Part shown: positions 12,651-64,000 of the stretch, in pieces
Layout: each line of letters starts with the position of its first letter
How positions within the stretch are numbered: position 1 is the first letter of the stretch
Assembly (NCBI RefSeq): GCF_011386835.1
Contig: NC_088797.1
Span: forward strand, 29,450,001 to 29,514,000
DNA from: Chrysemys picta bellii
Lineage: Eukaryota
Reading direction: 5' to 3'
DNA: 64,000 nt
The notes under the pieces: generated by a model
Database searches by the model: none
What the model was told of the DNA's origin: nothing
The model's input: the letters and a program-made list of their open reading frames with translations, nothing else
Position numbers and translations under genes: made by a program

Positions 12651-12761
12651 TTTCTCTTCTGGGGTTGCCATATGCAGGCCTGGCTCCCTGCTCTAACCAC
12701 TAGATTCCACTCCCCTCACCTGAGTTCTGTCCCTGGCTCTGGGAGGAGAATGGGGTACAGT

Positions 12762-14341: not shown

Positions 14342-14499
14342 CCCCACCCAGAGGTAGCTTTGGTGGTGGTGGCGGTGACACCAAGAAACAACTTGACGGG
14401 GTGAGGCCGCAGGTGTGCTGAGACCAGACACCCTCTCATGCTGACCACTACTGTCTCACTGTTACCTTGTGCTCCCCCATCTCTCTGTCTCTCTACCCC

Positions 14500-38000: not shown

Positions 38001-41000
38001 CGTCTGCTGTTGTCACCTTCCTGATGGACCAGAATGAGCCACGCACGCCTGCCGTGGCTGTGACCTCCGGCCCATTTGTCTATGTCTACAAGAACCTGCG
38101 GCCCTACTTCAAATTTACCTTGCCCCCCCTGGATGCCAACCCCCTGGAGCTGGACGTCTGGGAGCAGGCCAAAGAGGTGAGCAGGTGGGGGGTGGCATGG
38201 CCATCCCAGGGTACCAGTCCACACCCCTGTCCCCCACCTCAAACCAATGGGCCCACCCCTCCCTGGCACTCCACATCAGACCCAGCTCTGGGAGTGGAGT
38301 CTAGTGGTTAAAATGGAGGGGCTTGGAGCCAGGACTCCTGGGTTCTATTCCCAGCTTATAGTCATGTGCCTTCCCATCTCTCTCTATCTGCATCTCGTTC
38401 CAGGACATGATCGACCCCCTGACTCTGAAGGAAATGCTGGAGGGGATCCGGTGAGTGTCTCTTCCTTCCCCCCATGGACTGTCACATCACCATGCCCCCC
38501 CAAAAACTTCGTCCTGGTCCTTGGCTTAGCAAGTGCTGGGAGCTAATGCCAGAGGCATTTAACATTCGATCCCTGGGTGTGGACTCTGGGGAGATCCTTG
38601 AGGTTAGAGCCGGGCATGCTGAGAGCCAGGACTCCCGGGTTCTATCCCCAGCTCTGGGAGGGGAGTGGGATCTAGTGGTTACAGTAGAGGGGGTGGGAAA
38701 TCAGGACTCCAGTGTTCTGTTGTGGATGGCAGGGTCTGTGATGGTGAATGTATCGTATTGAGTTTCTGTCCAATGTCTTCCTCTCTGTTCAACATCTTCC
38801 TCTCCTGGTGTGTGTCAGGGACAAGGCGGAAATCCCCCTGTCGGTACGATCACTGAGGTAAGGCCATATGGTACCACTGAGGGCAAGGAGTGGCATGAGC
38901 ACCTCACCCTCCAGCGATTTCCTGGCTAGCACCAAAAACGTGGGCTGGGAGCTCTAGGAGCCTGATTTTTGTAGGGGATTGGAGCAGGGAGATTGAGGCT
39001 GGTGGCCAAAGGAGAATGTGTGAAGGGGTCAGGGCTGGATCCTGGCAACGGGGAAGGCAGATGGTGTAGGGAGCACAGGCTGGGGATTGGGGATCAGGGA
39101 GGGATCTCAGCAGTAGAGGAGGCGGGTAGCGTGCGGAGCACAAGACTGGGAGGTGACGGATCTCGGCAGTGGGGGAGGCGGGTGGTGTGTGGAGCACAAG
39201 CTGAGGGAGGGATCTCGGCAGTAGGGCAGGTGGGTGGTGTAGGGAGCACAAGCTGGGGCGGGGGGGATCGGGGAGGGATCTCAGCAGTGCGGGAGGCGGT
39301 TGTGTGACAAGGGTCGTGTGGGGAGCACAAGCCGGGAAGGTGGGGGTCGGGGAGGGATCTCGGCAGTGGGGGAGGCGGGTGGTGTGGGGAGAACAAGCCA
39401 GGGAGGTGGGGGTCGGGGAGGGATCTCGGCAGTGGGGGAGACGGGTGGTGTGGGGAGCACAAGCTGGGGAGGTGGGGGTCGGGGAGAAAGCTCGGCAGTG
39501 GGGAGGCGGGTGGTGTGAGGAGCATAGGACGGGAGCGGGGACGTTTTCCCAAAGCTTGGAAGGCTCTCAGCAGCAGAGCTCCTGTTCTAAGGGGTAGGGG
39601 GGGACACTGGGCCAGAGGAGGCTGTGTCACTATCCCACAATCCCCTTCTCTGTCTCCCCCACCCCTAGGTTCCTGGCCCAAGATGTACCAGAGATGGAGA
39701 ATTTTGTGAACCTACATAAGGGGCAACCGATCAAGCGCCAGGTGGGTCCCTGCCCTGCCCTGAGTCTGGGGAAAACTCCCCAGTGGACCCTCCCAGAGTA
39801 GGGGACTCGGTGGGGTGGGGGTTAGAGAAAAGGGGTATTCTAGCATTGCCAGTTCCCCACCGATGACTTGCGGGTCCCAGAAGGGCCATCCGGGTACCCT
39901 TACTTCCCAGCATGCCCCTGAGGAGACTGGCACTGCCCACCCTTGGTAGAGAGGGGGACTGGGGAAGGGGGAGGTTCATGCCCATCTCCCTGTCCAGACT
40001 GTCATCACCTGCATGAGCACGCTGAAGAAGAACATGGCGGATGAGGATGCGGTCAGCTGCCTGGTGATCGGGACGGAGAGCGCCGATGTCCTCATCCTGG
40101 ACCCTGAGGCCTTCACTATCCTGGCCAAGGTGAGTGGGGTGCCGGGTAAGGGGGTCTGTATATAAACAGTCCCCGCATCCCACCCCAGAGGTGGCTGCAT
40201 CTCAGCACCAGGCAAGGGACCCCTGATCATATGTAGCTCGTTCCCATGGGTGTGGGGCTGCCCCAGCTCTCCATTTGCTGTTGCAGATGACGTTGCCGAG
40301 CGTGCCAGCCTTCCTGGACGTGATGGGGCAGTTCGATGTGGAGTACCGGGTCACGGTGGCCTGCCGGGACGGGAGCATCTACATCCTGCGCAGGTGACAG
40401 CCATCTGTCTTGGAGCCTGGGGCTGGAATGGGGCAAAGGGGAAGGCAGAGGAGTGCTGAGGAACATAAGATAAGGAACCTGGTATGTCTCCTCCTCCCCC
40501 CGGATCAGACCTATGGTCCTTTCCAGCTTGGTATTCCCTTCCCTCTCCAATCAGACCCATGGGCTTATCCCAATACTCTGCCTCTCTGCTGCCCCACTGC
40601 CCAACAGCCACCCATGCCAGTTGCCCATAATGCACCTCTGTAGCGCTCTCCCATAGGGATGATTCCCTCCATGCAAGGGCTCAGCCAAGCCCAGGTGCCT
40701 GAAGGTTTGGTCTTGCTGTAACATCCCTACGAGTGAGGCCTGTCTGTGCCCATTCCCTGGGCACAGGGGGTGGGTGGGGGAGTGACGGGAGCCCACAAGG
40801 CAGGGGTGCAAGGAGGGAGCTGGGTGGGGCAGCAAGCACTGGGGCGGGCTGGCACTGACCTGTCTGCCCTCCCTTCCCACTCCAGGGAATCCAAGCGGCC
40901 CAAGTACTGCATCGAGCTGAGTGCCCAGCCCGTGGGGCTGGTGCGGGTACACAAGAATATCGTGGCCGGCTGCTCTGACGAAACCCTGCAGGGCTATACA

Positions 41001-44000
41001 CAGAAGGTGGGAGTGGGTGAGGGCACCTGCTACGGGGCACTAGGGGTGGGGCAGCTGGGCAGGTCTTGGAACCTATGTGCCCCCAGATCTGCTCCCTACA
41101 CCACCTGTTACCAAGGTGCCTCTCCCTGGGAGGACCAGCAGGAGATCTCCATACCTCCATTCTAGGTCTGGTCTGCTAAGGGGGCCAGTGTCACAGGGGT
41201 GGCACGCAAGGGATCCTTGTATAAATAGTCCCCCTCCCCCATCCCAGAGGCAGATAAACAGTCTTGCACCAGAAATGGTTACATCTAAGTGCCAGATCTC
41301 TTTCTCTTACAGGGGAAGAAGCTCTGGACAGTCTATCTGCCAGCCCCACTAATGACTATGAGCCTCCTAGACCAGAAATCACGCGGCTTCCAGGCCGTGA
41401 TGGTAGGTCTGGCCAACCAGGAGGTGCACATGTACCGGGACAAAAACCTTGTGGACATCATCCGCACGCAGGTAACTTTCCCACCAGGCAAAGCCAGTGC
41501 CAGGGTTAATGCAGGACTTCTGGGTTCTATCCCAGCTTTGGGCGGAGAGTAGGGTCTCATGGGCTAGAGCAGGAGGCTGGGAGCCAGGCCTCTTAAGTTC
41601 TATCGCTGGTTCTGAGAAGGGAATGGGGTCTAGTGGCTTAGAGTGAGGAGGCTAGGAGCCAGGATTGTGGATCTGATGGTTATGGGGGAGCCAGGACACT
41701 GGCCGAGCTGCCTGATATCACATTTCCACCCCCCCTCGCTCCCTCACAGGACGTGGTCACCAGCATTTGCTTTGGCCGCTATGGGCGTGAGGACAACACC
41801 CTGATCATGACGACTAAAGGTAGGCAAGGGGCATGCCGGGCGGGCACCATTCAGTTCCGTGCAATTGCTTCTGTGCAGTAGTGAATGCACCCTGCAGGGG
41901 ATGCTGCCGGCTGTGTGCAGGACACCCTGCCCAGCCCCATCTGTAAGGACACCCTGACCCTAGCTTAGAAATTCTACTCTCAGGCATCTGGGCATCAGCT
42001 GGGCTCCAGCTGGTGGGTCAGGAAGGAATTCAACTCCCGTGGGACAGTGCAGTGCAGCAAGGGGCATTAAGGAGACAGTACACCATGGGGAATAGGCCCA
42101 CAGGTCTGATCCAGGGAGAGGGGATTCAGGACCTTTGTGCCCATTTGTGGTGGTCCCACCCCACAGGCGGGGGGTTGATCATCAAGATCCTGAAGCGCAC
42201 GGCCGTGTTTGAGGAGAAGGACACGTCGCTGGGCCCTCCTGTGGCCCAGAGCATCCGACTCAGCGTGCCCAAGAAGACCAGGCTGTACGTGGACCAGACG
42301 CTGCGGGAGCGGGAGAATGCTGTGGGTGAGTAGGGCACGAATGGTGGGTTGAGGAGGGGGACTGCTTGTGGGCAGGTTGAGGATGGAGCAGCTGGGAGTG
42401 TAGGGGAATAAGGAGGGGGAATAGAGATTAGGGGTGGGAGGCAAGGTGGGGCATCTCCCATTCCATTTCCCATGCTCCCCCGGCCATGAGTCTCCTCCCA
42501 TGCGCCCAGCCGTAGAGTCACCAGTCCCACTCTGAGCATCAACCATGGGAAAGAGAGAAGCCACTGGATTGGGATTTACTTACCAGCTCAGCATGTCCAT
42601 GCAAATGCACTGACCAGCCACTGGGGGCGCTGTGCTGCAGGGAGCAGGATGGGGACTCAGTGCTGACCCTGGTGCCAGCGGAGCGACACTAAAGGTCCCT
42701 GTGCTGCAGATAAGGCATAAAGCCAAGATCCGTTGTGATTGGTAGAGATCCCCCTTATTGATTGGCTGCTGGCCCCAGGCTGACTGTCTGTCCTCGCTGT
42801 CCCTTCACCCCTCGCCAGCCATGCACCGCGTGTTCCAGATGGACCTCTACCGGCTGCGGCTCATGGCAGCCCGGGCCTATGTCAAGGCGCTGGAGTCCAG
42901 CCTGGTGCCCGTCACATCCACACTTCAGGAGCCCCTTAAGATGAATGCCGTGGTGAGTGGGTCATGGGGACACCAGACCCTTGGAATGAGGAGGGTATGG
43001 GGCATTTGGAGGGAGCCAGGAGACGGGGTGAGAAAATTCAGGATTGCGCAGGCGGAGGCTGTTCTTCCACAAGGATACTGACCCACGGGGGAGGGGTCAG
43101 CGAGGAGCCACGCGAACAATGGAAACCCTGGGCCTCAGGGAGCCCTAGTGGAAGAGTTCCTCTGAGAGAAGGTCCTGAGGGGGCTTGTCCCGGTCTCTCT
43201 GCGTAGTGGGGGGATTTGTGGGAGCAGGGGGTTCATGAAGGTCGCAGACAAAGTCTGAGCAAGAGCCAGGAGCCACCGTCAGCCACAGCCAGTGTTTAGC
43301 AGGGAGAGGGATTTGCCCTTCGGACAACAGGGGGCAGGGAACTCTCCATCGCTTGGGGGCTTTCAATCCAGAGGGGATGTGGCTCTAGCTCAGTGAGCAG
43401 ATCTGGGCTGAACTCCGGAATGGTGGGGGTGAGATTTGGGATTCAATCATCTCTTTAGATTTCCAGGGGTCCCTTCTTGTGGCTCCTGTGATGGAGAACC
43501 CCTCCCCCCCCCCAACCCCAGGCTGACTGGATTGGCTGTGGGATCAAGGACTCCTCTCTCCTTTGCACTGAACCTATGCTCAGGATCTACCCCACCCCCC
43601 CTTCCCCAGGTCCAGGGTATCGGCCCCACCTTCAAACTGACCCTCCACATTCAGAACACGTCAGCTGGGCGCCCCTCCATCAACCTGCTGGTGAGCTTCC
43701 TCTACGACCAGAGCCTCTATGCCATGAAGAGAGCCTTCTTCAAGGTACTCCCACCCCCCAACACCTCTGACCACCCCTACAGGCCCCTGCACTCTGCCTG
43801 ACTCAGCTTTGTCTCCCTACAGGCCCCCATGCTGGTCCCGGGACTGAACTACCCCATTGAAACCTTTGTGGAGTGTCTGAGCGACAAGGGGATCTCGGAC
43901 GTCATCAAGGTTTGTAGAGGGACACCCCACCGCAGAGAGATGCCTGACCCTTTAAAATGCTCCCACCTCCCTCCTGGTGTGGGTGGGTGGGGGGTTAGGA

Positions 44001-44203
44001 CCCAGAGGTGGCTGCATCTCAGTGCCAAGGGAGGGATCCATGTATAAGGAGGCCCTGCACCCCACCCCAGAGGTGGCTGCATCTCAGCACTGGGCGCTCT
44101 GTCTTCTCTCTTGCAGGTGTTTGTATTGCGGGAGGGCCAGAGCATGCCCTTGCTGACTGCCCATATCAACATGCCAGTGAGTGAGGGCCTGGTTGCTGCC
44201 TGA
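35059..44203 (+). CDS. BBS1: Bardet-Biedl syndrome 1 protein (BBSome subunit), 17 exons, 590 aa
   Basis: Exons 35059-35096, 35478-35554, 37495-37529, 37904-38176, 38404-38450, 38819-38857, 39669-39741, 39998-40129, 40287-40393, 40886-41006, 41313-41471, 41750-41819, 42167-42325, 42819-42952, 43610-43744, 43823-43909, 44117-44203; total 1773 nt, open. Motifs [52 protein letters not shown]. Confidence 0.97.
36555..36760. mobile_element. Penelope-type short repeat
   Basis: cccaggatattagcgagacaaggtggg...acttgtctctctcaccaacagaagttggtccaata; same family as the host at 10620-11210. Confidence 0.65.
39060..39530. repeat. G-rich degenerate minisatellite in BBS1 intron 6
   Basis: Repeats of gggatctcggcagtgggggaggcgggtggtgtggggagcacaagc (~60 bp). 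Confidence 0.75.
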
Positions 44204-44662
44204 ACCGCCTCTGGGGGGCGATAGAGACCAGAGCTGCAGTAGATCCCCTAGGAGCCCTCACTGGATCAGAGCCAGGACTGGGAGCCGAGGCCCCCTGCTG
44301 TGCAGTGACCCACCAGCTGCCCCCAGGGTGCACATTGCTGACTTGGGACCATGTAGAGTGGGGTGTCAGGGTTGCTGCTTCCCCAAACCGCCACCTGGGG
44401 TGCAGACCCAGCTGCGTTGTCTGGGATCAGGCCAGCTCCTTACATCAGAGGTGGTGGGGGGAGGTCTTATGCCCAGGCTGGAATTAAGAGCTGCTGGGGA
44501 AAGGGGTGTTTCTCCCCCATCATGGCCCTGGGGGCAGCACCTGGAAACCCCCTTAGCTGTGATCGTAGCATCTCACTAAAGCCAGCACCGTTGCTGTAAC
44601 GAGGGTGCTGGTGTGTGGAGTGCGTAGCATGGTGGGAGTCGGGTGGTACACTCAAGTTAACA

Positions 44663-44721
44663 ATTAAACAACCTCCCCCCATCAAAGGGGCCACACACAC
44701 AGCCCATAAAAGCAGTTTAAT
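44663..44721. terminator. Convergent poly(A) signals of BBS1 (+, ATTAAA 44663-44668) and CTSW-A (-, ATTAAA 44716-44721)
   Basis: Variant hexamers on opposite strands about 50 bp apart between the two stop codons. Confidence 0.5.
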
Positions 44722-44964
44722 GGCAGTTTCACAGGCCCCTTTCGCTGCTGCAGCAAAGGGAAGGAGCATTCGCGTGGAGGCAGTGTTGCTGGAAGGGCCG
44801 AGCCCAGCTCTGGGTACCTGTGGGGATGGAGCTAGAGCAGTCTGAGTATCGAATTCATTCCCCCATCACCCAGGGAAGGCCCGTGGCCCCAGTTAGTTCT
44901 GTCTTGGTGGTAGCAGGGGTCTTGGCAGGAAGTCAGCAGGCTCTCTGCAGCAGCAGCACCCCCT

Positions 44965-47900
44965 TCAGGGCGGGCAGGGGACTTTATGTTCCGGAGCCCC
45001 AACGCGGTGGACGGTGGCTGTTACAGGGAACGTGGTGATGCCGCAGGCGTTACTGCCGCGATGGAGACGGTAATAGCCCTGCCGAGGGGACACGTGGTTA
45101 GGGACAGATGGTACTGGACAGTCTTTCCTCACCTAGGGCTGCTCTACACCGGGAACTGACATTGGCATAGCTCTGTCTCTCGGGGGTGTAACAATCCACA
45201 CACTCCGAGAGACATAGCCGTGCGGCCCTGCCCCCGCAGTAGCCTGCACTAGGTGGATGGAAGAATTCTCCCGCCTCTCACTCCACCTTTGCGTCAAACT
45301 GGAACGGGGTCTGAACCTGCACAGGGAGTGGATAATACAGGGGTAGCCAACCTGTGGCTCCGAGCCACATGTGGCTCTTCAGAAGTTAATATGTGGCTCC
45401 TTATATAGGCACCGACTCCGGGTCTGGAGCTACAGGCGCCAACTTTCCAATGTGCCGGGGGTGCTCACTGCTCAACCCCTGGCTCTGCCACAGGCCCTGC
45501 CCCCACTCCACCCCTTCCCTGAGCCTGTTGTGCCCTCACTCCTCCCCCCTCACACCCTAGAGCCTCCTGCATACCACAAAACAGCTGATGGGGAGGAAGG
45601 GGAAAGGCGCTGATTGGTGGGGCTGCCAGTAGGCGGGAGGTGCTGGGAAGCGGGGTGGAGGGGAGAAGCTGATGGGGGGCTGCTGATGTATTACTGTAGT
45701 TCTTTGGCAATGTACATTGATAAATTCTGGCTCCTTCTCAGGCTTAGGTTGGCCACTCCTGGTATAATAAAAGCCCACACCTCACCCCAGTGAGGGCTGT
45801 GTCTTAGCATTACTCATAGACTCATAGACTCTAAGGTCAGAAGGGACCATTATGATTATCTAGTCTGACCTCCCGCATGATGCGGGCCACAAAAGCTGAC
45901 CCACCCACTCCTGGAAGAATTCTCTCCCTTGACTCAGCTGTTGAAGTCCCCAAATCATGATTTAAAGACTTCAAATTGCTGAGAATCCTTCAGCAAGCGA
46001 CCCCTGTGTAAACAGTCCCTGCACCCCACCCAGAGTCCGTCTCTGTATGATCCCACAGCACAGCCTCCTTCAGACAAAACCAGCCCACACCCTCACAGCC
46101 AGCACTGCCCTGGGGGCAGCCCCATACACTCCCCACTCACCTCCTCTCCCCAGTCTTCCCCCCTGGAGTTCTGGATGACCCAGTACTGCATTTTCTTCTC
46201 TGAAATGAATTGGTGAAGAGAAAGGCACAGTGGTCTTAGTGTTTCTGACAGCTGAGCCCCCTGCCAAACTCCAGTTCATTTAACCCCATCTCACCCCAAT
46301 CCAAACCCTTGTACTGCCCATCCCCACTCACCATGCCCGTAACCAACCAGCAGGCCAACATGATCCACCCGGTCTGGACTACAGCTCTTCACTGAGGGCT
46401 GGGAGATGCCCAGTTTATAATGCTGCAGTGGCACAAAAATGAGCCAAAAGTGAATGGGCGGGGGGTGTCTTAGTGGGTGGATCACCATGGGTTGGGCTGA
46501 GTAGCCAGAGGGCTTCTCCCGCATTGCTAATTGGGAGGCACCTACCTTCATGACAGCTGAGTTCAGGGTAACTGTGATTGGGCCCTTGCTTGCGACGTGT
46601 GCAGCTATTTCTACAAGAGGAAACCCAAAAGTACGGGGTGAGGAGGAGGACCCAGGAACAAACACCCCTGACCCAGGCATGGCCCTACCAGGCTGCTGCT
46701 GTCCCCACACACTGGCTACATTGGCCCTTGCCCCTCTCTGGGCCCTCTACACCCCTCACATTCCCCCTCTGCTGCTCAGAGCTCCCCCAGGGGGAAGCAT
46801 GAAACTAACCAGCCCCTTGTTGGTTTCACACACATCACCCCATGCACCCTCCTGCCCATGCACAGCTGCCTGGAAACTGACCAGGTCTTGATCAGTTCTG
46901 CCCCTGCTTCCCCCCTTCCCTCCCAGCCCTCTTTGTCACCCCCCTAATCCTGTTCTACTGCCCTCACTTGCTTCCTTTGCCCTCACCACTCCCCCTCCTT
47001 GCCCCAGTGCTGGCCCCACCCCAACCCCTCTCCCCACAGGCCTCACCCTCCTCATCTCCAGGTAGTGTCTGGAAGCCCTGGATATAGGCAGCCAGCACAT
47101 TGAGGCTGTCGCATGTTTCCTGTGTCCCTGTGTAGGGGTAGGCATCCTCGCTGGTCAGACCACCTGGGAGGGAGTGTATGTGAAAGGTCTGGGATGGGCC
47201 CAGAGCGCCTCATTCCCTGCTCCATCCTTCCCCTGTTCTGGACTCAAGGGTCACAGTAAACCCCCTCCCCCCAAATTCAGCCTGTCACAGAGTATGGCCA
47301 GAGCAGAGTCTAGGAGTGAAGAGGAATGTCCCTTCTGTATACAGTATTGGGAAAATTGCTCCCAGTCTGGGTCAGGGTCCATGCACCACCTGGCGTAATG
47401 GGGGCTCCAATCTCAGTCAGGGTCTGCGCAGCGTCCAGTGATGGGGGCTGCAGATTGGGCTGGGGGCCCCAATCTCAGTCAAGGGGTCTGTGCAGCACCT
47501 GTGGTGACGGGGGCCCCAATCTGGGTTGGGGTCTGTGCAGTGCCTGGCACAATGGGGGGCCCCAGTATGAGTTGGAGTGAGTCTCCATGCACTGAAGTAT
47601 CCTTACAGTAAACAGTTGTGAGGGGTGAATAGGGGAGAGTCCTGGGAGCTGTGGGGGGCTTTATTGTCTGTAGGGCAAAGGAGCCCACGTCCCTCCAGTG
47701 CCTATATACCCTTGTGTAGCACCGTAGTGAAGGCGTCCCACACGTAGCCCCCTTTGCACCCCACTCCGCACAAGCTGCAGTCCAACACCTCTGCAAGGGA
47801 AGTAGTGGGTGAGCATCAAGCCAGCTCCCCCTCACCCCAGTCAGATCCTGGGATCCTGCTCCTGCTGGGTGGCACACACTGACCAGGAAAGACCCCAGTG

Positions 47901-50900: not shown

Positions 50901-50915
50901 GACTCCAGGCCCCAT
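44965..50915 (-). CDS. CTSW: Cathepsin W-like papain-family cysteine protease, copy A, 11 exons, 343 aa
   Basis: Exons (minus) 50915-50826, 50111-50045, 49579-49466, 48931-48798, 48542-48443, 47790-47710, 47163-47047, 46610-46546, 46422-46332, 46199-46141, 45078-44965; total 1032 nt, open. Signal peptide, I29 prodomain (GVTRFSDWT), [32 protein letters not shown]-terminus [13 protein letters not shown]...VPCPP as in cathepsin W. Confidence 0.88.
45338..45761. mobile_element. hAT MITE specific to CTSW copy A (last intron)
   Basis: TIRs CAGGGGTAGCCAACC / GGTTGGCCACTCCTG; TSD ggataata / gtataata; empty site at 56690-56697 in copy B. Confidence 0.9.
45812..46003 (-). mobile_element. CR1 3'-end fragment specific to copy A
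   Basis: Octamer tail actcatagactcatagactc and CR1 3'UTR; absent from the paralogous position about 56725-56750. Confidence 0.75.
48950..49440. repeat. Degenerate G-rich minisatellite in CTSW intron 3 (paralog at about 59790-60160)
   Basis: Repeats of gggtgcagagc(a/g)gtggggg. Confidence 0.75.
50200..50420. repeat. Minisatellite expansion in CTSW-A intron 1
   Basis: About 3 copies of cacagccctgctagtgccccccatccgcacccacagccc...; only a single unit in copy B. Confidence 0.7.
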
Positions 50916-51484
50916 GGCAGTAGCAGCTCAGTGCCTGCCTAGGCATCCTGTGGGGGGGTTATATGGGGAGGGGCAGGCAGAAGAGTGACGGAAACCACAG
51001 AGCAGAGGAGCTGCAGGTGTGAGATCCGGGGCCAGGGGGCAGATATGTGTATGTGGGGAGGGAATCCAAGGTGTGGGGGTTGGCTTCAGATGTCCAAGCA
51101 GCCTCAAACCTGCTCCTGTGCCCTCAGGGTCCACACCACGGGGGCGGGGGGACGGAGGATGGACAGATTTGGGGACAATGGGGCATTGTTCCATCCATTC
51201 CCATCGCTCATCTGCTCTACTACATTTAGCCCGAGGCACCAGCCCCTGGTGACTACCCTTCCCCCTCCCCCCCGTGGGAGGTAACAGTCCCCCAGAATCC
51301 AGGGACCTCGGGAGCAAAGACGCTTATGGAAACCACAGCACAGTGAACCTCTGTCCTATATAAACAGTCCCCGCATCCCACCCCAGAGATGGCTGCATCT
51401 CAGCACCAGGCGAAGGACTCCTGCTCATATACAGCTCGTTCCCATGGATGTGGGGCTGCCCCTGGTCTCCATTTGCTGTCGCAG

Positions 51485-54400
51485 ATGACGTTGTCGAGCG
51501 TGCCAGCCTTCCTGGACGTGATGGGGCAGTTCGATGTGGAGTACCGGGTCAACGTGGCCTGCCGGGACGGGAGCATCTACATCCTGCGCAGGTGACAGCC
51601 AGCCGTCGGGGTGCCTGGGGCTGGAATGGGGCAAAGGGGAAGGCAGGGGAGTGCTGAGGAACATAAGATAAGGAACCTGGTATGTCTCCTCCTCCCCCCG
51701 GATCAGACCTATGGTCCTTTCCCACTGCCCAACAGCCACCCATGCCAGTTGCCCATAATGCACCTCTCTTTGTAGCACTCTCCCATATGGGTGATTCCCT
51801 CCATGCAAAGGTTCAGCCCAGGCCCCGGTGCCTGAAGGTTTGGTCTTGCTGTAACATCCCTACGAGTGAGGCCTGTCTGTGCCCATTTCCTGGACACGGG
51901 GGGGAGGGGGAGGTGACAGGAGCCCACAAGGCAGGGGTGCAAGAAGGGGAGCTGGGTGGGGCAGCAAGCACTGGGGGGGGGAGGGCTGGCACTGACCTAT
52001 CTGCCCTCCCTTCCCACTCCAGGGAGTCCAAGCGGCCCAAGTACTGCATCGAGCTGAGTGCCCAGCCCGTGGGGCTGGTGCGGGTACACAAGAATATTAT
52101 GGCCGGCTGCTCTGACGAAACCCTGCAGGGCTATACACAGACGGTGGGAGTGGGTGAGGGCACCTGCTACGGGGCACTAGGGGTGGGGCAGCTGGGCAGG
52201 TCTTGGAACCTGTGTGCCCCCAGATCTGCTCCCTACATCACCTGTTACCAAGATGCCTCTCCCTGGGGGGACCAGCTGGAGATCTCCATAGCTCCATTCT
52301 AGGTCTGGTCTGCTAAGGGGGCCAGTGTCACAGGGCTGCCACGCAAGGGATCCTTGTATAAATAGTCCCCCTCCCCCATCCCAGAGGCAGATAAACAGCC
52401 TTGCAGCTCACCCCAGAGATGGCTACATCTGAGTGCTAGATCTCTTTCTCTTACAGGGGAAGAAGCTGTGGACAGTCTATCTGCCAGCCCCACTAATGAC
52501 CATGTCATAACTATAAAGGGAAGGGTAACAGCTGTCCTGTGTACAGTACTATAAAATCCCTCCTGGCCAGAGACTCCAAAATCCTTTTCCCTGTAAAGGG
52601 TTAAGAAGCTCAGGTAACCTGGCTGGCATCTGACCCAAAGGCCCAATAAGGGGACAAGATACTTTCAAATCTTGCGGGGGGGGGGGGGGAAGGCTTTTGT
52701 TTGTGCTCTTTGTTTGGGAGTTGTTTGCTCTTGGGACTGAGAGGGACCAGACATCAATCCAGGTTCTCCACATCTTTCTAAACAAGTCTCTCATATTTCA
52801 AATTTGTAAGTAAACAGCCAGGCAAGGCATGTTAGTTTTTACTTTGTTTTCTCAACTTGTAAATGTACCTTTTACTAGAGTGTTTATCTTTGTTTGCTAT
52901 ACTTTGAACCTGAGGCTAGAGGGAGATCCTCTGAGCTCTTTAAGTTTGATTACCCTGTAAAGTTATTTTCCATACTGATTTTACAGAGATGATTTTTACC
53001 TTTTTTCTTTAATTAAAAGTCTTCTTTTTAAGAACCTGATTGATTTTTTTCCTTGTTTTTAGATCCAAGGGGGTTGGATCTGTATTCACCAGGAGTTGGT
53101 GGAAGGAAGGAGGGGGGGATGGTTAATTTCTCCTTGTTTTAAGATCCAAGGGGGTTGGAACTGTATTCACCAGGAGTTGGTGGAAGGAAAGAGGGGGGAT
53201 GGTTCATTTCTCCCTGCTTTAAGATCCAAGGGGTTTGGATCTGTGTTCACCAGGGAATTAGTGAAGAGTTTCTCAAGGCTTCCCAGGGAAGGGAATCCAC
53301 TTGGGAATGGTGGCAGCGGACCAGATCTAAGCTGGTAGTTAAGCTTAGAAGTTTTCATGCAGGTCCCCACATTTGTACCCTAAAGTTCAGAGTGGGGAAG
53401 CAGCCTTGACAGACCATGAGCCTCCTAGACCAGAAATCACGCGGCTTTCAGGCCGTGATGGTAGGTCTGGCCAACCAGGAGGTGCACATGTACCAGGGCA
53501 AAAACCTTGTGGACATCATCCACACCCAGATAACTTCCCCAGAAAGCAAAGCCAGTGCCAGGGTTAATGCAGGACTCCTGGGTTCTATCCCAGCTTTGGG
53601 AGAAGAGTAAGGTCTCATGGGCTAGAGCAGGAGGCTGGGAGCCAGGCCTCTTGAGTCTTATCCCTGGTTCTGAGAAGGGAATGGGGTCTAGTGGGTTAGA
53701 GTGAGGAGGCTAGGAGCCAGGATTGTGGGTATGATGGTTATGGGGGAGCCAGGACACTGGCTGAGCTGCCTGATACCCCATTACCCCCCCTCGCTCCGCC
53801 ACAGGACGTGGTCACCAGCATTAGCTTTGGCCGCTATGGGCGTGAAGACAACACCCTGATCATGACGACTAAAGGTAGGCAAGGGGCATGCCGGGTGGGC
53901 ACCATTCAGTTCCGTGCAATTGCTTCTGTGCAGTAGTGAATGCACCCTGCAGGGGATGCTACCGGCTGTGTGCAGGACACCCTGCCCAGCCCCATCTGTA
54001 AGGACACCCTGACCCTAGCTTAGAAATTCTACCCTCAGACATCTGGGCATAAGCTGGGCTCCAGCTGGTGGGTCAGGAATGAATTCAACTCCCGTGGGAC
54101 AGTGCAGTGCAGCAAGGGGCATTAAGGAGACAGTACACCATGGGGGATGGGCCCACAGGTCTGATCCAGGGAGAGGGGATTCAGGACCTTTGTGCCCATT
54201 TGTGGTGGTCCCTCCCCGTAGGCGTGGGGTTGATCATCAAAATCCTGACAAGCACAGCTGTGTTTGAGGAAAAGGACACGTCGCTGGGCCCTCCTGTGGC
54301 CCAGAGCATCCGACTCAGCGTGCCCGAGAAGACCAGGCTGTACATGGATCAGACGCTGCGGGAGCGCGAGAATGCCGTGGGTGAATAGGGCAGGAATGGT

Positions 54401-55007
54401 GGGTTGAGGAGGGGGACTGCTTGTAGGCAGGTTGGGGATGGAGCAGCTGGGAGTGTAGGGGAATGAGGAGGGGGAGTGGAGATTGGGCGTGGGAGGTGAG
54501 GTGGGGCATCTCCCACCATTTCCCAGGCCCCCCCGGCCATGAGTCTCCTCCCATGTGCCCAGCCATAGAGCCACCAGTCCCACTCTGAGCATCAACCATG
54601 GGAAAGTGAGAAGCCACTGGATTGGGATTTACTTACCAACTCAAAGTATGTCAGTGCAAATGCACTGGCCAGCCACTGGGGGCGCTGTGCTGCAGGGAGC
54701 AGGGTGGGGACTCAGTGCTGACCCTGGTGCCAGCGGAGGGACACTAAAGGGCCCTGTGCTGCAAATAAGGCATAAAGCCAAGATCCGTTGTGATTGGTAG
54801 AGATCCCCCTTGTTGATTGGCTGCTGGCCCCAGGCTGACTGTCTGTCCTCGCTGTCCCTTCACCCCTCGCCAGCCATGCACCACGTGTTCCAGATGGACC
54901 TGTACCGGCTGCGGCTCATGGCAGCCCGGGCCTATGTCAAGGCGCTGGAGTCCAGCCTGGTGCCTGTCACATCCACACTGCAGGAGTCCCTTAAGATGAA
55001 TGCCGTG
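51485..55007 (+). pseudogene. BBS1: BBS1 partial pseudogene 1 (exons 9-14)
   Basis: Exon copies 51485-51591, 52023-52143, 52457-53529 (split by LTR; donor GT to AT at 53530), 53805-53874, 54222-54380, 54874-55007; exons 1-8 absent, exons 15-17 deleted; 3'UTR homology resumes about 55506. Confidence 0.93.
52503..53411. mobile_element. Solo LTR (909 bp) inserted in pseudo-exon 11
   Basis: TGTCA...TGACA termini; perfect 5-bp TSD GACCA (52498-52502, 53412-53416); internal 3x repeat aagatccaaggggttggatctgtattcaccagg. Confidence 0.93.
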
Positions 55008-56210
55008 GTGAGTGGGTCATGGGGACACCAGACCCTTGGAATGAGGAGGGTATGGGGCATTTGGAGGGAGCCAGGAGACGGGGTGAGGAAATTCAGGATT
55101 GCGCAGGCGGAGGCTGGGAGCCAGGACTCCTGGGTTCTCCACAGCTCTAGGAGGGGAGGGGGGTCTGGTGGGCGTGGGGCTGGGCAGTTTTCCCTACTGT
55201 GGGTTGTCCCTGTGCAGGACTATTTTTAAAATCCCCCTCCCATCCTGCCCTGCAATACCCATTCCCACACCCGCTCCAGCCTTCTTTCTTGAATTTTTAT
55301 CCTGCTCCTGCCATTATGGCAGCAGGACCCTCAGGATCCCCGTCCCGCTGCAGGGTTCTAGGTTGAAGCACATGGTCTAACTACTAGACTAAGCTGCCTG
55401 CTTTGGCAGGGTCACTGGTGGGAGAGAAGCATCTGATTTCTCTGTGCTCAGGGTGGAGGTGCTGGGAGCGGAGCAGGCAGCGCCCGCGAGGCCATTACAG
55501 GATGTTGCAGAGCTACAGTAGATCCCATAGGAGCCCTCACTGGATCAGAGCCAGGACTGAGAGCCAAGGCCCCCTGCTGTGCAGTGAACCACCAGCTGCC
55601 CCCAGGGTGCATGCTACTGACTTGGGACCATGTAGAGGGGGGTGTCAGGGCTGCCGTCCCCAGCCTGGGGTGCAGACCCAGCTGCGTTGTCTGGGATCAG
55701 GCCAGCTCCTTACGTCAGAGGGGGTGTGGGGAGGTCCAGAGCTGCTGGGGAAAGGGGTGTTTCTCCCCCAACATGGCCCTGGGAGCAGCACCTGGAAACC
55801 CCCTTAGCTGTCGTAGCATTTTAATAAAGCCAGCACTGTTGCTGTATCGAGGGTGCTGGTGTCTGGAGTGCGCAGTGCGGGGGGAGATAAGGGGGTACAC
55901 TCAGGTTAACAATCAAACAACCTCCCCCCATCAAAACACACACAGCACATAAAAGCAGTTTAATGGCAGCTTCACAGGCCCCTTTCGCTGCTGCAGCAAA
56001 GGGAAGGAGCATTCGCATGGAGGCAGTGTTGCTGGAAGAGCTGAGCCCAGCTCTGGGTACCTGTGGGGATGGAGCTAGAGCAGTCTGAGTATCGAATTCA
56101 TTCCCCCATCACCCAGGGAAGGCCCGTGGCCCCAGTTGGTTCTGTCTTGGTGGTAGCAGGGGTCTTGGCAGGCAGTCAGCAGGCTCTCGGCAGCAGCAGC
56201 ACCTCCTCCT

Positions 56211-59200
56211 TCAGGAGGGGCAGGGGACGTTATGTCCCGGAGCCTCAACACTGTTGACGGTGGCTGTTACAGGGAACGTGGTGATGCCACAGGCGTTACT
56301 GCCACGATGGAGACGGTAATAGCCCTGCCGAGGGGACACGTGGTTAAGGACAGATGCTACTGGACACTCTTTCCTCACCCAGGGCTGCTCTACACCAGCA
56401 ACTGACACTGACATAGCTCTGTCTCTCGGGGGTTAAAAATCCACACACCCCGAGAGATGTAGCAGTGCCGACCTCCCCCTGCAGTAGCCTGCGCTAGGTG
56501 GATGGAAGAATTCTTCTGTCAGCCCAGTTCCTGCCTCTCAGGGAAGTGGATGAACTTCAGTGACAGGAGACCCCCTGCCACTGGTGGAGTTGGCGGTGCA
56601 GCTGTGTTGTGGTAGCGGTTTAAGTGTAGACAAACCCTCACTCCGCCTTTGCGTCAAACTGGAATGGGGTCTGAACCTGGACAGGGTGTGGATAATAAAA
56701 GCCCACACCTCACCCCAGTGGGGGCCGTGTCTTTGTGTTAGGCAGGGGATCCTGTATAAACAGTCTCTGCACCCCACCCAGAGGCCATCTCTGTATGATC
56801 ACACAGCACAGCCTCCTTCAGACAAAACCAGCCCACACCCCCACAGCCAGCACTGCCCTGGGGGCAGCCCCATACACTCCCCACTCACCTCCTCTCCCCA
56901 GCCTTTCCCCCAGGAGTTCTTGATGATCCAGTACTGCCCTTCCTTCACTGCAATGAATTGGGGAAGAGAAAGGCACAGTGGTCTTAGTGCTTCTGACAGC
57001 TGAGCCCCCTGCCAAACCCCCAGTTCGTTTAACCCCATCTCACCCCAATCCAAACCCTTGTACTGCCCATCCCCACTCACCATCTTCCCCGTAGCCAACC
57101 AGCAGGCCAACATGATCCACGTGGTCCGGACTACAGTTCTTAACCGCGGGATGGGAGATGCCATTTTGATAATTCTGAAGAGGCACAAAAATGAGCTGAA
57201 AGTGAGTGGGGGGGGGGAAGAAGGGGGGGCCTTAGTGGGTGGGTCACCATGGGATGGGCTGAGTAGACAGAAGGCTTCTCCTGCGTTGCTAATTGGGAGG
57301 CACCTACCTTCATGACAGCTGAGTTCAGGGTAACTGTGATTGGGCCTGCGCTTGCGACGTGTGCAGCTATTTCTACAAGAGGAAACCCAAATGTACGGGG
57401 TGAGGAGCAGGACCCAGGAACAAACCCCTGACCCAGGCATGGCCCCACCAGACTGCTGTTGTCCCCACACACTGGCTACATTGGCCCTTGCCTCTCCCTG
57501 TGTCCTCTGGGCCTCCTGCACCCCTCACATTCCCCCTCTGCTGCTCAGAGCTCCTCCAGGGGGAAGCATGAAACTAACCAGACCCTTGTTGGTTTGACAC
57601 ATATCACCCCATGCACCCTCCTGCCCATGCACAACTGCCTGGAAACTGACCAGGTCTTGATCAGTTCTGCTGGCCCTGCTTCCCCCCTCTCCCCTCCCCA
57701 GCCCTCTTTGTCACCCCCTAATCCTGTTCTACTGCCCCTCACTTGCTCCCTTTGCCCCCAGAACTCAACCATAGATGGCCCACTCCCCCCTGGCCCCAGT
57801 GCTGGCCCCACCCCAACCCCTTTCCCCCCCAGGCCTCACCCACTTCATCTCCAGGAAGGGTCTGGAAGCCATGGATATAGGCAGCCGGCACATTGAGGTT
57901 GTGGCATGTCTCCTTTCTCCCTGTGTAGGGGTAGGCATCCTCGCTGGTCAGCCCACCTGGGAGGGAGTGTATGTGAAAGGTCTGGGATGGCCCAGAGTGC
58001 CTTATTCCCTGCTCCATCCTTCCCCTGTTCTGGACTCAAGGGTCACAGTAAACCCCTTCCCCCCAAATTCAGCCTGTCACAAAGAGTGTGGCCAGAGCAG
58101 GGCCTAGGACTGAGGAGGGGTCTCCCTTCTGTATACAGTATTGGGAAGATTGCTCCCAATATGGGTCAGGGTCCATGCACCACCTGGCGTGATGGGGGCC
58201 CTAACCTCAGTCAGGGTCTGCGCAGCATCCGGTGATGGGGGCCGCAGACTAGGCTGGGGGCCCCAATCTCAGTCAAGGGGTCTGTGCAGCACCTGTGGTG
58301 ACGGGGCCCCAATCTGGGTTGGCGTCTCTACAGTGCCTGGCATGATGGGAGGCACCAGTCTGAGTCCGAGTGATTCTCCATGCACTAAAGTATCCTCATA
58401 GTAAACAGCTGTGAGGGGTGAACAGGGGACAGTCCTGGGGGCTTTGGGGGGTTTATTGTCTGCAGGGCAAAGGACCCCATGTCCCTCCAGTGCCTACGTA
58501 CGCCTGTGTAGCACCGTAGTGAAGGCGTCCCATGCGTAGCCCCCTTTGCACCCTGCTCCACACCAGCTGCAGTCCAACACCTCTGCAAGGGAAGTAGTGG
58601 GTGAGCACCAAGCCAGCTCCCCCTCACCCCAGTCAGACCCTGGGATCCTGCTCCTGCTGGGTGGCACACACTGACCAGGAAAGACCCCAGTGGGCACAGG
58701 CTCATCCGACAGGCAGGACGTCCCACAGTGGCTCCCACCGGGGTGATCAACCCACCCCTGCATGGAGAGACTCAGCACCTGCCACCCCCTGCTTAAACAT
58801 CTGGTGGGGGGGGGTTCCAGGGGCAGGGCTCAGCTGATAGTAGACTGGGGGTGGGGGGAGGTGATGGGATCGTAGCCTACTAGGAGGCAAGTCTGTGGTG
58901 GGGCTGTCCCCCCACCCCAGTGAATGCTAATGGGGTGCAAATACATGAACCCCCATGCATGGAGACATGGTCCTTGTATACCCCACCCACCCAGCCTGCT
59001 CCCAGACCCATCAAGGGTTACAAGCTCCCAGTTGGGACAGGAAGTGAAGTGGGTACTTTACTCTCTCTCTCTTTCTCTCTCTCACACACACACTCTCTCT
59101 CTTCCCCCCTCTCACGGCTGGGAAGGGCACGGAGTTTACAACAGTCCCAAGCGCCCCCTTCTCTGTGCCCCCCATTCATCCCAGCCTTTGGGGCTGCTGC

Positions 59201-61470
59201 TCACAGCAGGGCAGCGCTGGGGTGCCCCACCCTGTTCCAGTCGAGGGGGCGGGGCTCCTCCCAGCCCCTACCTTGCACCGAGAGGTTCCGGGGCTGGTGG
59301 AAGTGGATGTTCCAGAGGGACTCGATATTGGCAACGGCAGCGAAGGCCCAGCAGGAGCCGCACTTATCGCCCTGCGGAGAGAGGGGTGAGGCCCAGCGTG
59401 GTGCTAGGGGGCGCTGTGCTGTAGGGCAGGAGGGGGCGCTCTCCCCAGCCTCAGCGTTGACCCCAATGCCCCAGCTGAGGGAGGGGGCGCCAGCTGTGGT
59501 TAGCAGTGGGGAGCGGGGTGGGGCTGGAATGATTTTGTCAGTACTGAGCCCCTCATGGCTCCCCCTGTCCTGCCCCATCTAACTGCCCATCTGGGGGGTT
59601 ACCAACCCCGCCCCTCCCACAACTACCTGGTTCTTCACGGCGGTCACGGCACCCGCCTTCCTCCAATCGCAGGAAGGGGGCAGCTTCTTCCTCGGGAGCT
59701 GGGGGGCCTGGTGCATGGTGTGGGGCGGGGGGCTCCGGAACATCCCCCGGAACTCCTCATCTGGGGAGATGGAGGGTGATGGTGCTGAGGGGGTGCTGGA
59801 AGGGGGAGTGAGGGGTGTAGAGCAGTGGGGGGCAGGCAAAAGGGGTGAAGAGCAGTGGAGACAGGGGAAGGGAGATGGTGCACGGAAGGGGTGCAGAGCG
59901 GTGGGGGCGGGGAAGGGAGTGCAGAGCAGTGGGGGCAGAGAAGGTGCATGGAAGGGGTGCAGAGCGGTTGGGGTCAGGGGAAGGGGGGTGAAGAGCGGTG
60001 GGGGTGGGGAAGGGAGAAGGTGCATGGGAAAGATGCAGAGCGGTGGAGCCGGGGGATGTGGGGTGCAGAGCGGTCAGGGCAGGAAATGGGGTGCATGGCA
60101 GGGGTGCAGAGCGGTGGGCAAAGGGGAAGGGAGGGGGGCAGAGGTGCAGGGGAGAGGGATGCGGCATTGGGGGTCGCTCCCCACCTGTCCAGTCGCTGAA
60201 GCGGGTCACCCCGTACTGCCCCGTGCCCAGCTCCATCTCCTGCAGCCGCCGCGCAGCGAGCAGGCTCCGCGTGAAGATCCCGAAGCGTCTGCGCTGCTCT
60301 GGAGGAGAGTGGGGGGGTCACAGGCACTGGGGGGCACGACACCCCCAGCCAGTGGCATCAGACACCCTGACCCCCCCAGCACTAATCGGGGCGGGGATTT
60401 TCCACCCTCCCCGCGCCTCTTTCCGCTGCCAGCTACAGAGCCGAACCACAGGGGACTGGGTGTGAAACCAGCGTGACAGAAAGAGCGAGACAGCAGCGGA
60501 GCCCCCGCCCCTCCCGCGCATCCCCCCGGCCCTGGGGGGAGGGGAACATGCAGGGCCTAGAAGGCGGCTCGTGGGCAGGCCAGGCCAGGCCAGGCTCAGA
60601 GGTGGCTGGTCACAGAGGCGTGGAGAAGGGGATCAGGGGTGGACAGACCAGCCCGCCTCAGCCCCATCCGTCCCCCTGCTTACCCCCAAAGTTCTCCCCT
60701 TGGTAACAGCCCCCAGGAAGAGCCGCCTGCCCCCCCCCACACCAACAGCCCCCCACTCCCGTCCTGCCCCTCACCTGCGGGGCTCCTGTAGGTTCTGTTG
60801 AACTGAATCATAAAATCCTTGAACATTAGTGTCACTTCAGTCTGAAATGGACAAACCGGCAGGATTGTGGGGAGCGAAGGGGCGTCCCAGCAACCAGTGC
60901 CCCTGCCTCAATTCCCACTCCCAGCCCCCAGCTACCCACAGCTCTGCTAATGCCTCCCAATCCCCACCCAAAGTCCCCTGCTACCCCTACCCCAGCTCCC
61001 GGCTATCCCTGCTTTGGGGTGGAGTCCACTGCTGTCTGGGGTGGATGGGGGGACATGCCCGTCTGGATGGGTGGGCGTTGGTGTCTGTGCAGTTTGGGTG
61101 TGTGTGTGTGGGAGCACATGGAGCATGGGGGAGTGTGCAAGGAGCATGAGGCACAGACTGGCCTACAGTGGTGGGGAATGGCTACAGGACCTTTTCCTCT
61201 CTCGGGTGCTGGCTCCAATCCCCATCCCTGGATTCTCCACACATGCACCAAATGCTGGGTCTCAGCACAGTAGCCAGTGAGTCTTGGCACAGACACTCGG
61301 TGTCTTCTCTGTCCTTCTCTAGCTTTCAGGCCCACTCCGCCCCAAAACTGCTCCCTCCAGGTGCATCCTCCATCCCTTACCTTGCTGAGTTCAGGGGGCA
61401 GAACAGAGCCAGCTGGGAGGGCCCAGGCCCACAGCAGCAGGAGACAGGGACTCAGGACTCCAGGCCCCAT
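56211..61470 (-). CDS. CTSW: Cathepsin W-like cysteine protease, copy B, 11 exons, 344 aa
   Basis: Exons (minus) 61470-61381, 60841-60775, 60298-60185, 59760-59627, 59371-59272, 58582-58502, 57956-57840, 57372-57308, 57174-57081, 56947-56889, 56324-56211; total 1035 nt, open. Canonical [29 protein letters not shown]. Confidence 0.9.
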
Positions 61471-62913
61471 GGCAGTAGCAGCTCAGTGCCTGCCCAGGCA
61501 TCCTGGGGGGTTATATGGGGAGGGGCAGGCAGAAGAGTGGCGGAAACCACAGAGCAGAGGAGCTGTAGGTGTGAGATCCGGGGGTGGGGGAGCATATGTG
61601 TGTGTGGGGGGGAGGGAATCCGAGATGTGGGGGTTGGGCTTCAGACGTCCAAGCAGCCTCAAACCTGCTCCTGTGCCCTCAGGGTCCGCACCACGGAGGG
61701 GGGCAGATTTGGGGACAATGGGGCATTGTTCCATCCATTCCCATCCTCATCTGCTCTACTACATTTACCGGGAGGCACCATCCCCTGGTGACCACCCTCC
61801 CCCCATGGGAGGTAAGAGTCCCCCAGAATCCAGGGACCTCGGGAGCAAAGACGCTTATGGAAGCCACAGCACAGTGAACCTCTGTCTGGGGCCGGCCTGG
61901 CCATGCTGAAATTCGGCCCGGATGCCTGGGTCCGCACCCTGAGTCCAGGGAAAAGGATCAGCCATGACCTCCAGGTAACACTGCACTGGAGAAGTGAGGC
62001 ACATAGCACCCCCTACTGAACCCCCCGCAGCTCAGCACCTCCTAGGGCTGCACTAGGCCATTGGGGCCAGCACTGATTGTGAGGGGCGAGTGCCCCCTAC
62101 TGAATCCCCACCCTGCGGCCTGTCTAGCTAGCGAGGCAGGCCCTGTTCAGAGACATGGCTGAATCCACCCTACCCAGTTCCCCCCACCCCAGGCCTTGAA
62201 CAGGTGCAGGCGCTGAGCTTGCAAACAGCTAATCACCTGACAGATTTCAGCCCTGCAGGCCCCCCCAGCTCATTGTACTCAGCACCACCAGGCTCTGTGC
62301 TTCATCCTGACACAATCAGCCCCCTGCTAGCTTAGCCCAGGGCTCCCCCTGACTCTGCCTCTGCCCCTCCATCCTGACTTGCAGCCCCCCCCCGACAACT
62401 CCTCAGCTTTGGACCCCGTTTATCCCCAGAATCCCGGTCCCTCCTCCTGCCCCTGGCTCATTTAGTTGAACAGTTGCTGTGTTTTAAGGGTCCCACACCC
62501 AGGGCCTGTGTGGGATGGCAAAGGAATCATTAGTGTGAAAGGTCTGAAATCTCCATCACTTCAGGAAACATGGTGCCTGATTCACCAGTGAGTGGGGAGT
62601 CCAGGGCTGGGAGAGCAGGGGGCTGTGGGTCAGGATAGGGCCCAGGGTTGGGGATGGGGATTGGGGAGGGATCTCAGCAGTGGGAGAGGCAGGTGGTGTG
62701 GGGAGCACAAGCCGTGGGGGTGGGGATCGGGAAGGGATCTGGGCAGTGGGGGAGGCAGGGAGCATAGGCTGGGGAGTGGGGGGGACGTTTTCCCAAAGCT
62801 TGGAAGGCTCTCAGCAGCAGAGCTCCTGTTCTAAGGGGTAGGGGGGACACTGTGGGCCAGAGCAGGCTGTGTCACTATCCCACAATCCCCTTCTCTGTCT
62901 CCCCCACCCCCAG

Positions 62914-64000
62914 GTTCCTGGCCCAAGATGTTCCAGAGATGGAGAATTTTGTGAACCTACATAAGGGACAACCGATCAAGCGCCAGGTGTGTCCCTGCCC
63001 TGCCCTGGGTCTGGGGAAAACTCCCCAGTGGACCCTCCCAGAGTAGGGGACTCGGTGGAGTTGGGGTTCGAGAAAGGGGGTATTCTAGCATTGCCAGTTC
63101 CCCACCAATGTCTTGTGGGTTCCAGCAGGGCATCCGGGTACCCTTACTTCCCAGCACGCCCCTGGGGAGACTGGCACTGCCCTCCCTGGGTAGAGATGGG
63201 GACTGGGGAGCTCTTATGCCCATCTCCCTGTCCAGACTGTCATCACCTGCATGAGCACGCTGAAGAAGAACATGGCGGATGAGGACGCGGTCAGCTGCCT
63301 GGTGATTGGGATGGAGAGCGCCGATGTCCTCATCCTGGACCCTGAGGCCTTCACTATCCTGGCCAAGGTGAGTGGGATGCCAGAGGTGGCTGCATTTCAG
63401 CACCAGGCAAGGGACCCCTGCCCATATATAGCTCATTCCCATGGGTGTGGGGCTGCCCCAGCTCTCCATTTGCTGTCGCAGATGACGTTGCCGAGCGTGC
63501 CAGCCTTCCTGGACGTGATGGGGCAGTTTGATGTGGAGTACCGGGTCAACGTGGCCTGCCGGGACGGAAGCATCTACATCCTGCGCAGGTGACAGCCATC
63601 TGTCATGGAGCCTGGGGCTGGAATGGGGCAAAGGGGAAGGCAGGGGAGTGCTGAGGAACATAAGATAAGGAACCTGGTATGTCTCCCCCTCCTGCCAGAC
63701 CAGACCTATGGTCCTTTCCAGCTTGGTATTCCCTTCCCTCTCCGATCAGACCCACGGGCCCATCCCAATACTCTGCCTCTCTGCTGCCCCACTGCCCAAC
63801 AGCCACCCATGCCAGTTGCCCATAATGCACCTCTCTTTCTGGCGCTCTCCCATAGGGTGATTCCCTCCAGGCAAGGGCTCAGCCAAGCCCCCGTGCTTGA
63901 AGGTTTGGTCTTGTGTAACATCCCTACGGGTGTGACCTGTCTGTGCCCATTCCCTAAGGGGCACTAGGGGTGGGGCAGCTGGGCAGGTCTTGGAACCTGT
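62914..64000 (+). pseudogene. BBS1: BBS1 partial pseudogene 2 (exons 7-9; exon 10 deleted; continues past window end)
   Basis: Exon copies 62914-62986, 63236-63367, 63482-63588; intron-6 homology starts about 62650; intron 9 is joined to intron 10 at about 63955-63965. Confidence 0.9.

Follow-up and report, generated by a model that had tools for sequence, protein, structure and literature searches.

The 64-kb stretch analysed here (the window), positions 29,450,001 to 29,514,000 of contig NC_088797.1 from the turtle Chrysemys picta bellii, contains the gene BBS1 followed by a tandem array of cathepsin W (CTSW) genes, in which every CTSW copy is accompanied by a piece of BBS1. Self-BLAST and a repeat finder, applied to the window (N count of 0), showed that unit A (40159-51356) is repeated head-to-tail as unit B (51357-61886), with 86-95% identity by block in self-BLAST. 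A reading made earlier from the letters alone had reported this repeat of about 11 kb, with the second unit ending near 61890 (now placed at 61886), and a third BBS1 fragment at about 62650; the fragment is present, and the intervening 61887-62649 is single-copy CTSW flank outside the repeat. Head-to-tail direct copies with definable junctions, as expected of tandem segmental duplication, are thus present, and the locus is probably a genuine, old CTSW array that grew over several separate steps. The public record around copies B and C (CM062324.1, in which the record coordinate equals the window position plus 29,450,000) extends the sequence to window-equivalent position 83861, and contains two further units, C and D. 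The features of the array are as follows, with positions beyond 64000 given as window equivalents.

35347-44203, plus strand: BBS1, the real gene, with exon 2 near 35.4 kb and the stop at 44203, from Pfam matches and splice borders
39669-39741, 39998-40129, 40287-40393, 40886-41006, 41313-41471, 41750-41819, 42167-42325, 42819-42952, 43610-43744, 43823-43909 and 44117-44203, plus strand: BBS1 exons 7-17
39031-39540: 66-bp minisatellite in BBS1 intron 6, the counterpart site of the left end of unit C (junction J2), from the repeat finder
40159-51356: unit A, comprising BBS1 from 30 nt inside intron 8 to exon 17, the whole of CTSW-A and 441 bp of upstream flank, from self-BLAST and alignment
44965-50915, minus strand: CTSW-A, 11 coding exons, 343 amino acids, from exon models (XP_065407156.1)
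50915-50826, 50111-50045, 49579-49466, 48931-48798, 48542-48443, 47790-47710, 47163-47047, 46610-46546, 46422-46332, 46199-46141 and 45078-44965, minus strand: CTSW-A exons
51356/51357: junction J1, CTSW upstream flank fused to BBS1 intron 8, from a four-way alignment
51357-61886: unit B, from self-BLAST and block distances
51485-55007, plus strand: BBS1 passenger B, exons 9, 10, 12, 13 and 14 with intact splice sites, exon 11 split, exons 15-17 deleted
52503-53411: 909-bp insert in exon 11 of passenger B, with TG..CA ends and a 5-bp target-site duplication (52498-52502 and 53412-53416)
56211-61470, minus strand: CTSW-B, 11 coding exons, 344 amino acids, model carried over by alignment (XP_065407160.1)
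61470-61381, 60841-60775, 60298-60185, 59760-59627, 59371-59272, 58582-58502, 57956-57840, 57372-57308, 57174-57081, 56947-56889 and 56324-56211, minus strand: CTSW-B exons
61887-62649: single-copy stretch, a longer CTSW upstream flank retained behind copy B only, found once in the window
62650-64000, plus strand: start of unit C and junction J2, with BBS1 exons 7 (62914-62986), 8 (63236-63367) and 9 (63482-63588), continuing beyond the window to CTSW-C
62650-74135: unit C, BBS1 exons 7-9 and 11-17 and an intact CTSW-C
from 77561: unit D, BBS1 exons 15-17 and a fourth CTSW, after a 3.4-kb spacer

The CTSW-A model was built from stop-free pieces and splice signals and was transferred to copy B by alignment. 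Both genes have GT-AG borders at 10/10 introns and open frames, in agreement with the 11 exons, intact splice sites and open frames first described from the sequence, to which the minus strand is now added. The models are identical to the RefSeq proteins XP_065407156.1 and XP_065407160.1, both named "cathepsin W-like" from Chrysemys picta bellii, and CTSW-A and CTSW-B are therefore already annotated; CTSW-C is also intact and identical to XP_065407161.1, so that three intact CTSW genes (A, B and C) are already in the NCBI annotation. The RefSeq proteins were reached from a single exon searched against a library of 1.84 billion proteins. For domain searches, exons were compared singly with Pfam, while the joined models were assembled locally and the identical RefSeq proteins were used thereafter. 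The exon-by-exon order was I29 (20-55) followed by Peptidase_C1 (1-20, 22-53, 55-79 and 150-178), and the RefSeq proteins carry PF08246 and PF00112. All top named relatives, from turtles, lizards, crocodilians, amphibians and mammals, were cathepsin W or W-like, with cathepsin F lower at no more than 44% identity, and a protein tree placed the copies among turtle CTSW. These comparisons identify the array gene as cathepsin W, the assignment originally made.

Alignment to cathepsin F (1M6D), which underlies the residue positions given here in papain numbering, showed that Cys25, His159 and Asn175 are present in CTSW-A and that these columns are kept in B, C and D. There is one additional residue between the oxyanion Gln and the catalytic Cys, and Trp177 of the Asn-Ser-Trp motif is replaced by Arg in A and in copy D. 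The changes private to A include positions 58, 61 and 177, at or near the substrate cleft. The Arg of the motif CRSCW, which was considered as a defect of copy A, was rejected as such because the same Arg is found in C, D and Mauremys; it is therefore ancestral in turtles, and the Gly found in B is derived.

Copy D (79437-83861), which shares Asn-Ser-Arg with A, carries one inserted nucleotide in exon 3 and an exon 4 with an in-frame stop, which makes it a pseudogene; no NCBI protein is called at this site. The expectation that the array continues downstream thus held, with an intact and a dead copy in public DNA past the window, and the unit count is at least four (A, B, C and D). No gene is called beyond copy D, and the sequence covered, up to position 83861, stops short of the far end of the array.

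BBS1 itself lies downstream of DPP3 (Pfam Peptidase_M49), which is on the plus strand. Pfam matches to BBS1 on exon 4 (E 8e-37) and to GAE_BBS1 on exon 15 (E 8e-12), AG/GT at all exon borders and an open frame identify the copy at 35347-44203 as the real gene; full-length BBS1 (588-589 amino acids) also adjoins CTSW in Malaclemys and Pelodiscus. The stops of BBS1 (44203, plus strand) and CTSW-A (44965, minus strand) are 761 bp apart, tail to tail, so that duplication of a whole CTSW gene would take along a 3′ piece of BBS1. BBS1 is therefore a passenger by position, carried along with CTSW, rather than the unusually unstable flank that the sequence-only reading had proposed.

The BBS1 passengers had also been described as decayed, which is correct for B and fits C poorly. 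Passenger B has lost exons 15-17 (A 43061-44229 corresponds to B 55116-55508), and its exon 11 is split by the 909-bp insert, which holds an 81-bp internal tandem repeat and from its ends and target-site duplication looks like a candidate solo long terminal repeat. Passenger C is missing exon 10 only; its ten remaining exons (7-9 and 11-17) contain no stop, have all their splice sites intact and differ from the real gene at 27 positions in 1143 nt. On its own, passenger C has a frameshift after exon 9. The BBS1 fragments of A, B and C are approximately equidistant, at about 5%. A BBS1-like gene of 384 amino acids is annotated by NCBI from 51389 to 67549, and could be rebuilt by joining an ATG that lies in what was intron 8 to passenger B's exons 9-10 and then to passenger C's exons 11-17 (64244-67549), giving 1155 nt with no internal stop. 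This composite predicted gene spans CTSW-B in antisense.

The junctions between units were then compared. J1 is exact to the base in the four-way alignment, and its two parent sequences have no extended homology at the break, which points to non-homologous rejoining and not to recombination between repeats. Unequal recombination mediated by a short interspersed element (SINE), considered for J1 because a repeated element lies near both breakpoints, was dropped for the same reason. J2 sits inside the 66-bp minisatellite of BBS1 intron 6, the left end of unit C (approximately 62650-62655) matching the sequence from 39407 onward, and J3 bears the 3.4-kb spacer (approximately 74135-77560). J1, J2 and J3 all differ from one another, indicating that breakage and rejoining took place on at least three separate occasions. 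The Emys and Malaclemys assemblies also contain J2, paralogue-specific RNA contigs exist, and the flank at 61887-62649 lies upstream of the CTSW genes of Emys, Malaclemys and Mauremys as well. Derivation of unit C as a recent copy of A, through duplication of a 23-kb A+B block, was considered on the basis of intron 8 (96% identity between A and C versus 93% between A and B), and was rejected for the CTSW part, as CTSW-C is equally near A and B (both 89.8%).

G-rich minisatellites in CTSW intron 3 (48948-49447 and 59811-60131) and a 72-bp repeat in intron 1 (50204-50408) are of unequal length in the different copies, and explain much of the drop in block identity. Outside the array, two 340-bp direct copies (25112-25446 and 25795-26137) share 96% identity and are 680 bp apart. 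An Rfam scan of the window gave no match.

The same region was compared in four other turtles, in which the following layouts were found.

Emys orbicularis: BBS1, a C-like CTSW, a spacer with BBS1 exons 15-17, a B-like CTSW, J2, then a C-type BBS1 fragment
Malaclemys: BBS1, one CTSW resembling A at the 3′ end (97.5%) and B in the 5′ half (92.9%), J2, then the C orthologue (95.6%)
Mauremys reevesii: two CTSW genes with a GAE_BBS1 fragment between them, and a TMED10-like gene beyond
Pelodiscus: full BBS1 adjoining two tandem CTSW genes and, between these, 230 bp derived from the BBS1 exon-14 region

A BBS1 piece follows the first CTSW copy in Malaclemys; in Emys, Mauremys and Pelodiscus such pieces lie between copies. 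Tandem CTSW with BBS1 pieces is therefore widespread in turtles and not special to the Chrysemys lineage, contrary to the lineage-specific expansion first suggested, and several lizards and amphibians carry extra "cathepsin W-like" proteins. The proposed comparison across turtles, crocodilians and lizards thus rests on loci for the four turtles and on protein relatives for the other groups, as W-named matches and the lizard extras. The suggestion that the array varies was supported by the different layouts of the emydid species. Copy B has an orthologue in Emys, and copy C in both Emys and Malaclemys. The emydid copies fall into groups of their own in the protein tree, with B paired with an Emys protein (support 95/95), and Mauremys, Trionychia, Pleurodira and Chelydra each have their own pairs; sea turtles and tortoises have one annotated CTSW. 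Copy C is nearest to every outgroup (88-89% identity versus 83-85% for A and B, and 81-83% for D). The hybrid-looking CTSW of Malaclemys (10001-15649 of the Malaclemys record) is the expected remnant of an unequal crossing-over between A and B. The B orthologue in Emys (10001-15371 of the Emys record) has GG for GT at the intron 9 donor and an exon 11 that is one base shorter, with an NCBI model of 387 amino acids, and may be decaying.

Comparison of the copies showed a deficit of nonsynonymous differences in every pair. The ratio of nonsynonymous to synonymous differences per site (pN/pS) was 0.54 for A and B (P against neutral 0.0065), 0.50 for A and C (P = 0.0046), and 0.42 for B and C (P = 0.00056), and fell to 0.33 between B and its Emys orthologue (P = 3e-5) and between C and its Emys orthologue (P = 3e-4). 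Changes unique to one sequence among seven were counted for each terminal branch, with a neutral expectation of 77% nonsynonymous. The branch of copy A had 14 nonsynonymous and 4 synonymous changes, which is indistinguishable from neutral (P = 1.0), whereas the branches of copy B (9:11, P = 0.002) and copy C (2:5, P = 0.01) were constrained; the difference between A and the combined B and C counts gave a Fisher P of 0.018. From these rates and the state of copy D we infer that B and C are probably maintained under purifying selection, that A may be drifting or changing function, and that D is lost. The claim that selection retained the extra copies is therefore supported in part, through B and C; the counts for A do not support it, and D is a pseudogene.

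Transcription was assessed from public sequencing runs. Fourteen runs contain 8-14% of the sampled words of CTSW-A, which is approximately its exonic share. Logan contigs of four runs (from four studies) were placed on CTSW-B exons 4-11 at 88% likeness; such contigs give no expression levels. The contigs are joined at the modelled exon borders of introns 4, 5, 7, 8 and 10, and as spliced sequences they derive from RNA. Decoding of diagnostic letters against A, C and D showed A-type letters in all four runs and C-like letters in three of the four. A single contig matches B exactly along 106 nt of exon 7, with a joint to exon 8; in this stretch, 11 sites separate B from A, 7 from C and 11 from D. 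The paralogue-specific RNA check that had been advised for spleen and blood was thus answered in part, with spliced A-type, C-like and B-exact contigs, and with neither expression levels nor tissue assignment. Expression of one copy or none, combined with a dN/dS near 1, had been named as the outcome that would speak for neutral decay; this was not what was found for B and C, whereas A is transcribed yet changes at a neutral rate on its own branch. In the region 44203-45300, A-type contigs also cover the last intron of CTSW-A; these may be BBS1 3′ untranslated region from the opposite strand, in which case the BBS1 and CTSW transcripts would overlap tail to tail.

Some contig letters are absent from all of A-D (for example at 56231, 56270 and 57123, in contigs at 56190-59763), and none of the older RefSeq CTSW proteins of C. 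picta is an exact match, the highest identities being 94.7% to A, 97.1% to B, 92.1% to C and 90.7% to D. Together these hint at further copies or divergent haplotypes in other individuals.

As a course of events for the array in C. picta bellii, we infer that J1 would have arisen by non-homologous rejoining, J2 at the minisatellite and J3 together with the 3.4-kb spacer, and that the array would later have been reshuffled by unequal crossing-over, for which the other gene orders and the hybrid-looking gene in Emys and Malaclemys are the grounds. The copies would then have followed a birth-and-death course, in which C is slow and ancestral-like, B is constrained, A is transcribed and changing at a neutral rate with its active-site Trp lost, and D is a pseudogene.

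Several observations weigh against this account. The CTSW bodies of A and B are more diverged (7-13% substitutions) than their BBS1 parts (4.4-6.7%) and CTSW promoter flanks (about 5%), and a simple one-step duplication of A and B does not fit this pattern. J1 is known from this assembly only. Crude parsimony was used for the terminal-branch counts, which are low, and the tree as well as these counts could be distorted by gene conversion. The B-specific RNA is one short contig in one run, and the runs have no tissue label. Finally, the array in other individuals may differ from the one described.

An assembly artefact, in which haplotypes or collapsed and expanded reads were set side by side and the true state is one BBS1-CTSW unit, would be favoured by J1 being seen in this assembly alone and by the older C. 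picta RefSeq models, whose differences from A-D show a locus that is hard to assemble. However, the copies are 5-13% apart, with indels, a 909-bp insert and a deletion that are private to single copies, which is far beyond allelic difference; J2 and the layout of unit C recur in the independent Emys and Malaclemys assemblies, B has its own orthologue in Emys, and independent studies contain spliced RNA contigs of A-type, B-exact and C-like sequence, so that an artefact is very improbable. Real tandem copies could instead descend from one ancient duplication of the BBS1 3′ end and CTSW in the turtle ancestor, with gene conversion mimicking lineage-specific copies. This is consistent with the piece of the BBS1 exon-14 region that lies between two CTSW copies in both Pelodiscus and Mauremys, with the clustering of paralogues by lineage, and with the near-equal distances among the BBS1 fragments of A, B and C. 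On the other hand, the three C. picta junctions are unlike each other and unlike the Mauremys junction, sea turtles and tortoises have one annotated gene, and the tail-to-tail order means that independent events would also capture BBS1 3′ ends. A single ancient duplication with concerted evolution is therefore a serious possibility but the less likely one, and tandem CTSW in turtles may be either ancient or recurrent.

The remaining alternatives concern the fate of copy A. If the expansion were adaptive, all intact copies including A would be kept for a new or broader specificity in cytotoxic lymphocytes, and A would be under positive selection. The open frame of A, its complete set of splice sites, the A-type letters in 4/4 RNA runs, its private changes around the cleft and a branch ratio at or above neutral could all be read in this way. 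That ratio is nevertheless indistinguishable from neutral, a frame with 18 substitutions on its branch would by our estimate stay open by chance about half the time, and the Trp-to-Arg change is common to A and the dead copy D; this explanation of A, drawn from sequence comparison, is considered unlikely. A related reading would make the locus a fast-turning immune-protease cluster whose copies diverge at cleft positions 23, 58, 61, 68 and 177, with A re-specialised or non-catalytic instead of dying and the composite 384-codon frame perhaps expressed as an N-terminally truncated BBS1, and little credence is given to it either. An old array built in several steps, with B and C probably constrained and A changing at a neutral rate, is the explanation preferred here.

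The array is an ordinary gene-family expansion of a known kind, namely a birth-and-death tandem protease cluster with partial-gene passengers. No paper describing a turtle CTSW array was found in a literature search. Cathepsin W is a cytotoxic-lymphocyte (NK and CD8 T cell) protease that mammals have as a single gene, and human CTSW is not known to adjoin BBS1. The turtle genes share with mammalian CTSW the orthology group, the I29 and Peptidase_C1 domains, the Cys/His/Asn triad, a short pro-region and cathepsin F as the next family, as well as a C-terminal tail that we take to resemble that of human CTSW. They differ in number, the turtle having one dead CTSW and no fewer than three intact ones, in their arrangement tail to tail with BBS1, and in the one extra residue between the oxyanion Gln and the catalytic Cys. 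Like the granzyme clusters and the rodent placental cathepsin L-like genes, the turtle array consists of tandem proteases with uneven rates, a pseudogene and species differences in order and number; unlike them, it is small (about four units), and each unit carries a truncated, unrelated housekeeping gene. As in other partial-gene passengers of segmental duplications, the truncated neighbour copies decay by insertion and deletion, whereas the turtle passengers are distinctive in that exons 9-10 of B and 11-17 of C jointly give an uninterrupted frame of 384 codons, annotated by NCBI as a predicted gene.

The locus is a clean, small example of how tail-to-tail gene pairs yield truncated passengers on duplication. 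Caution is needed when reads are mapped, genes annotated or orthologues assigned for turtle BBS1 and CTSW, as the real BBS1 gene has exon copies of 95-98% identity within 40 kb, and these can be misleading. For cathepsin W itself, turtles offer natural variants side by side, with a conserved C, a constrained, derived B, a Trp-less A and a dead D, and their comparison could reveal which residues of the protease are important.

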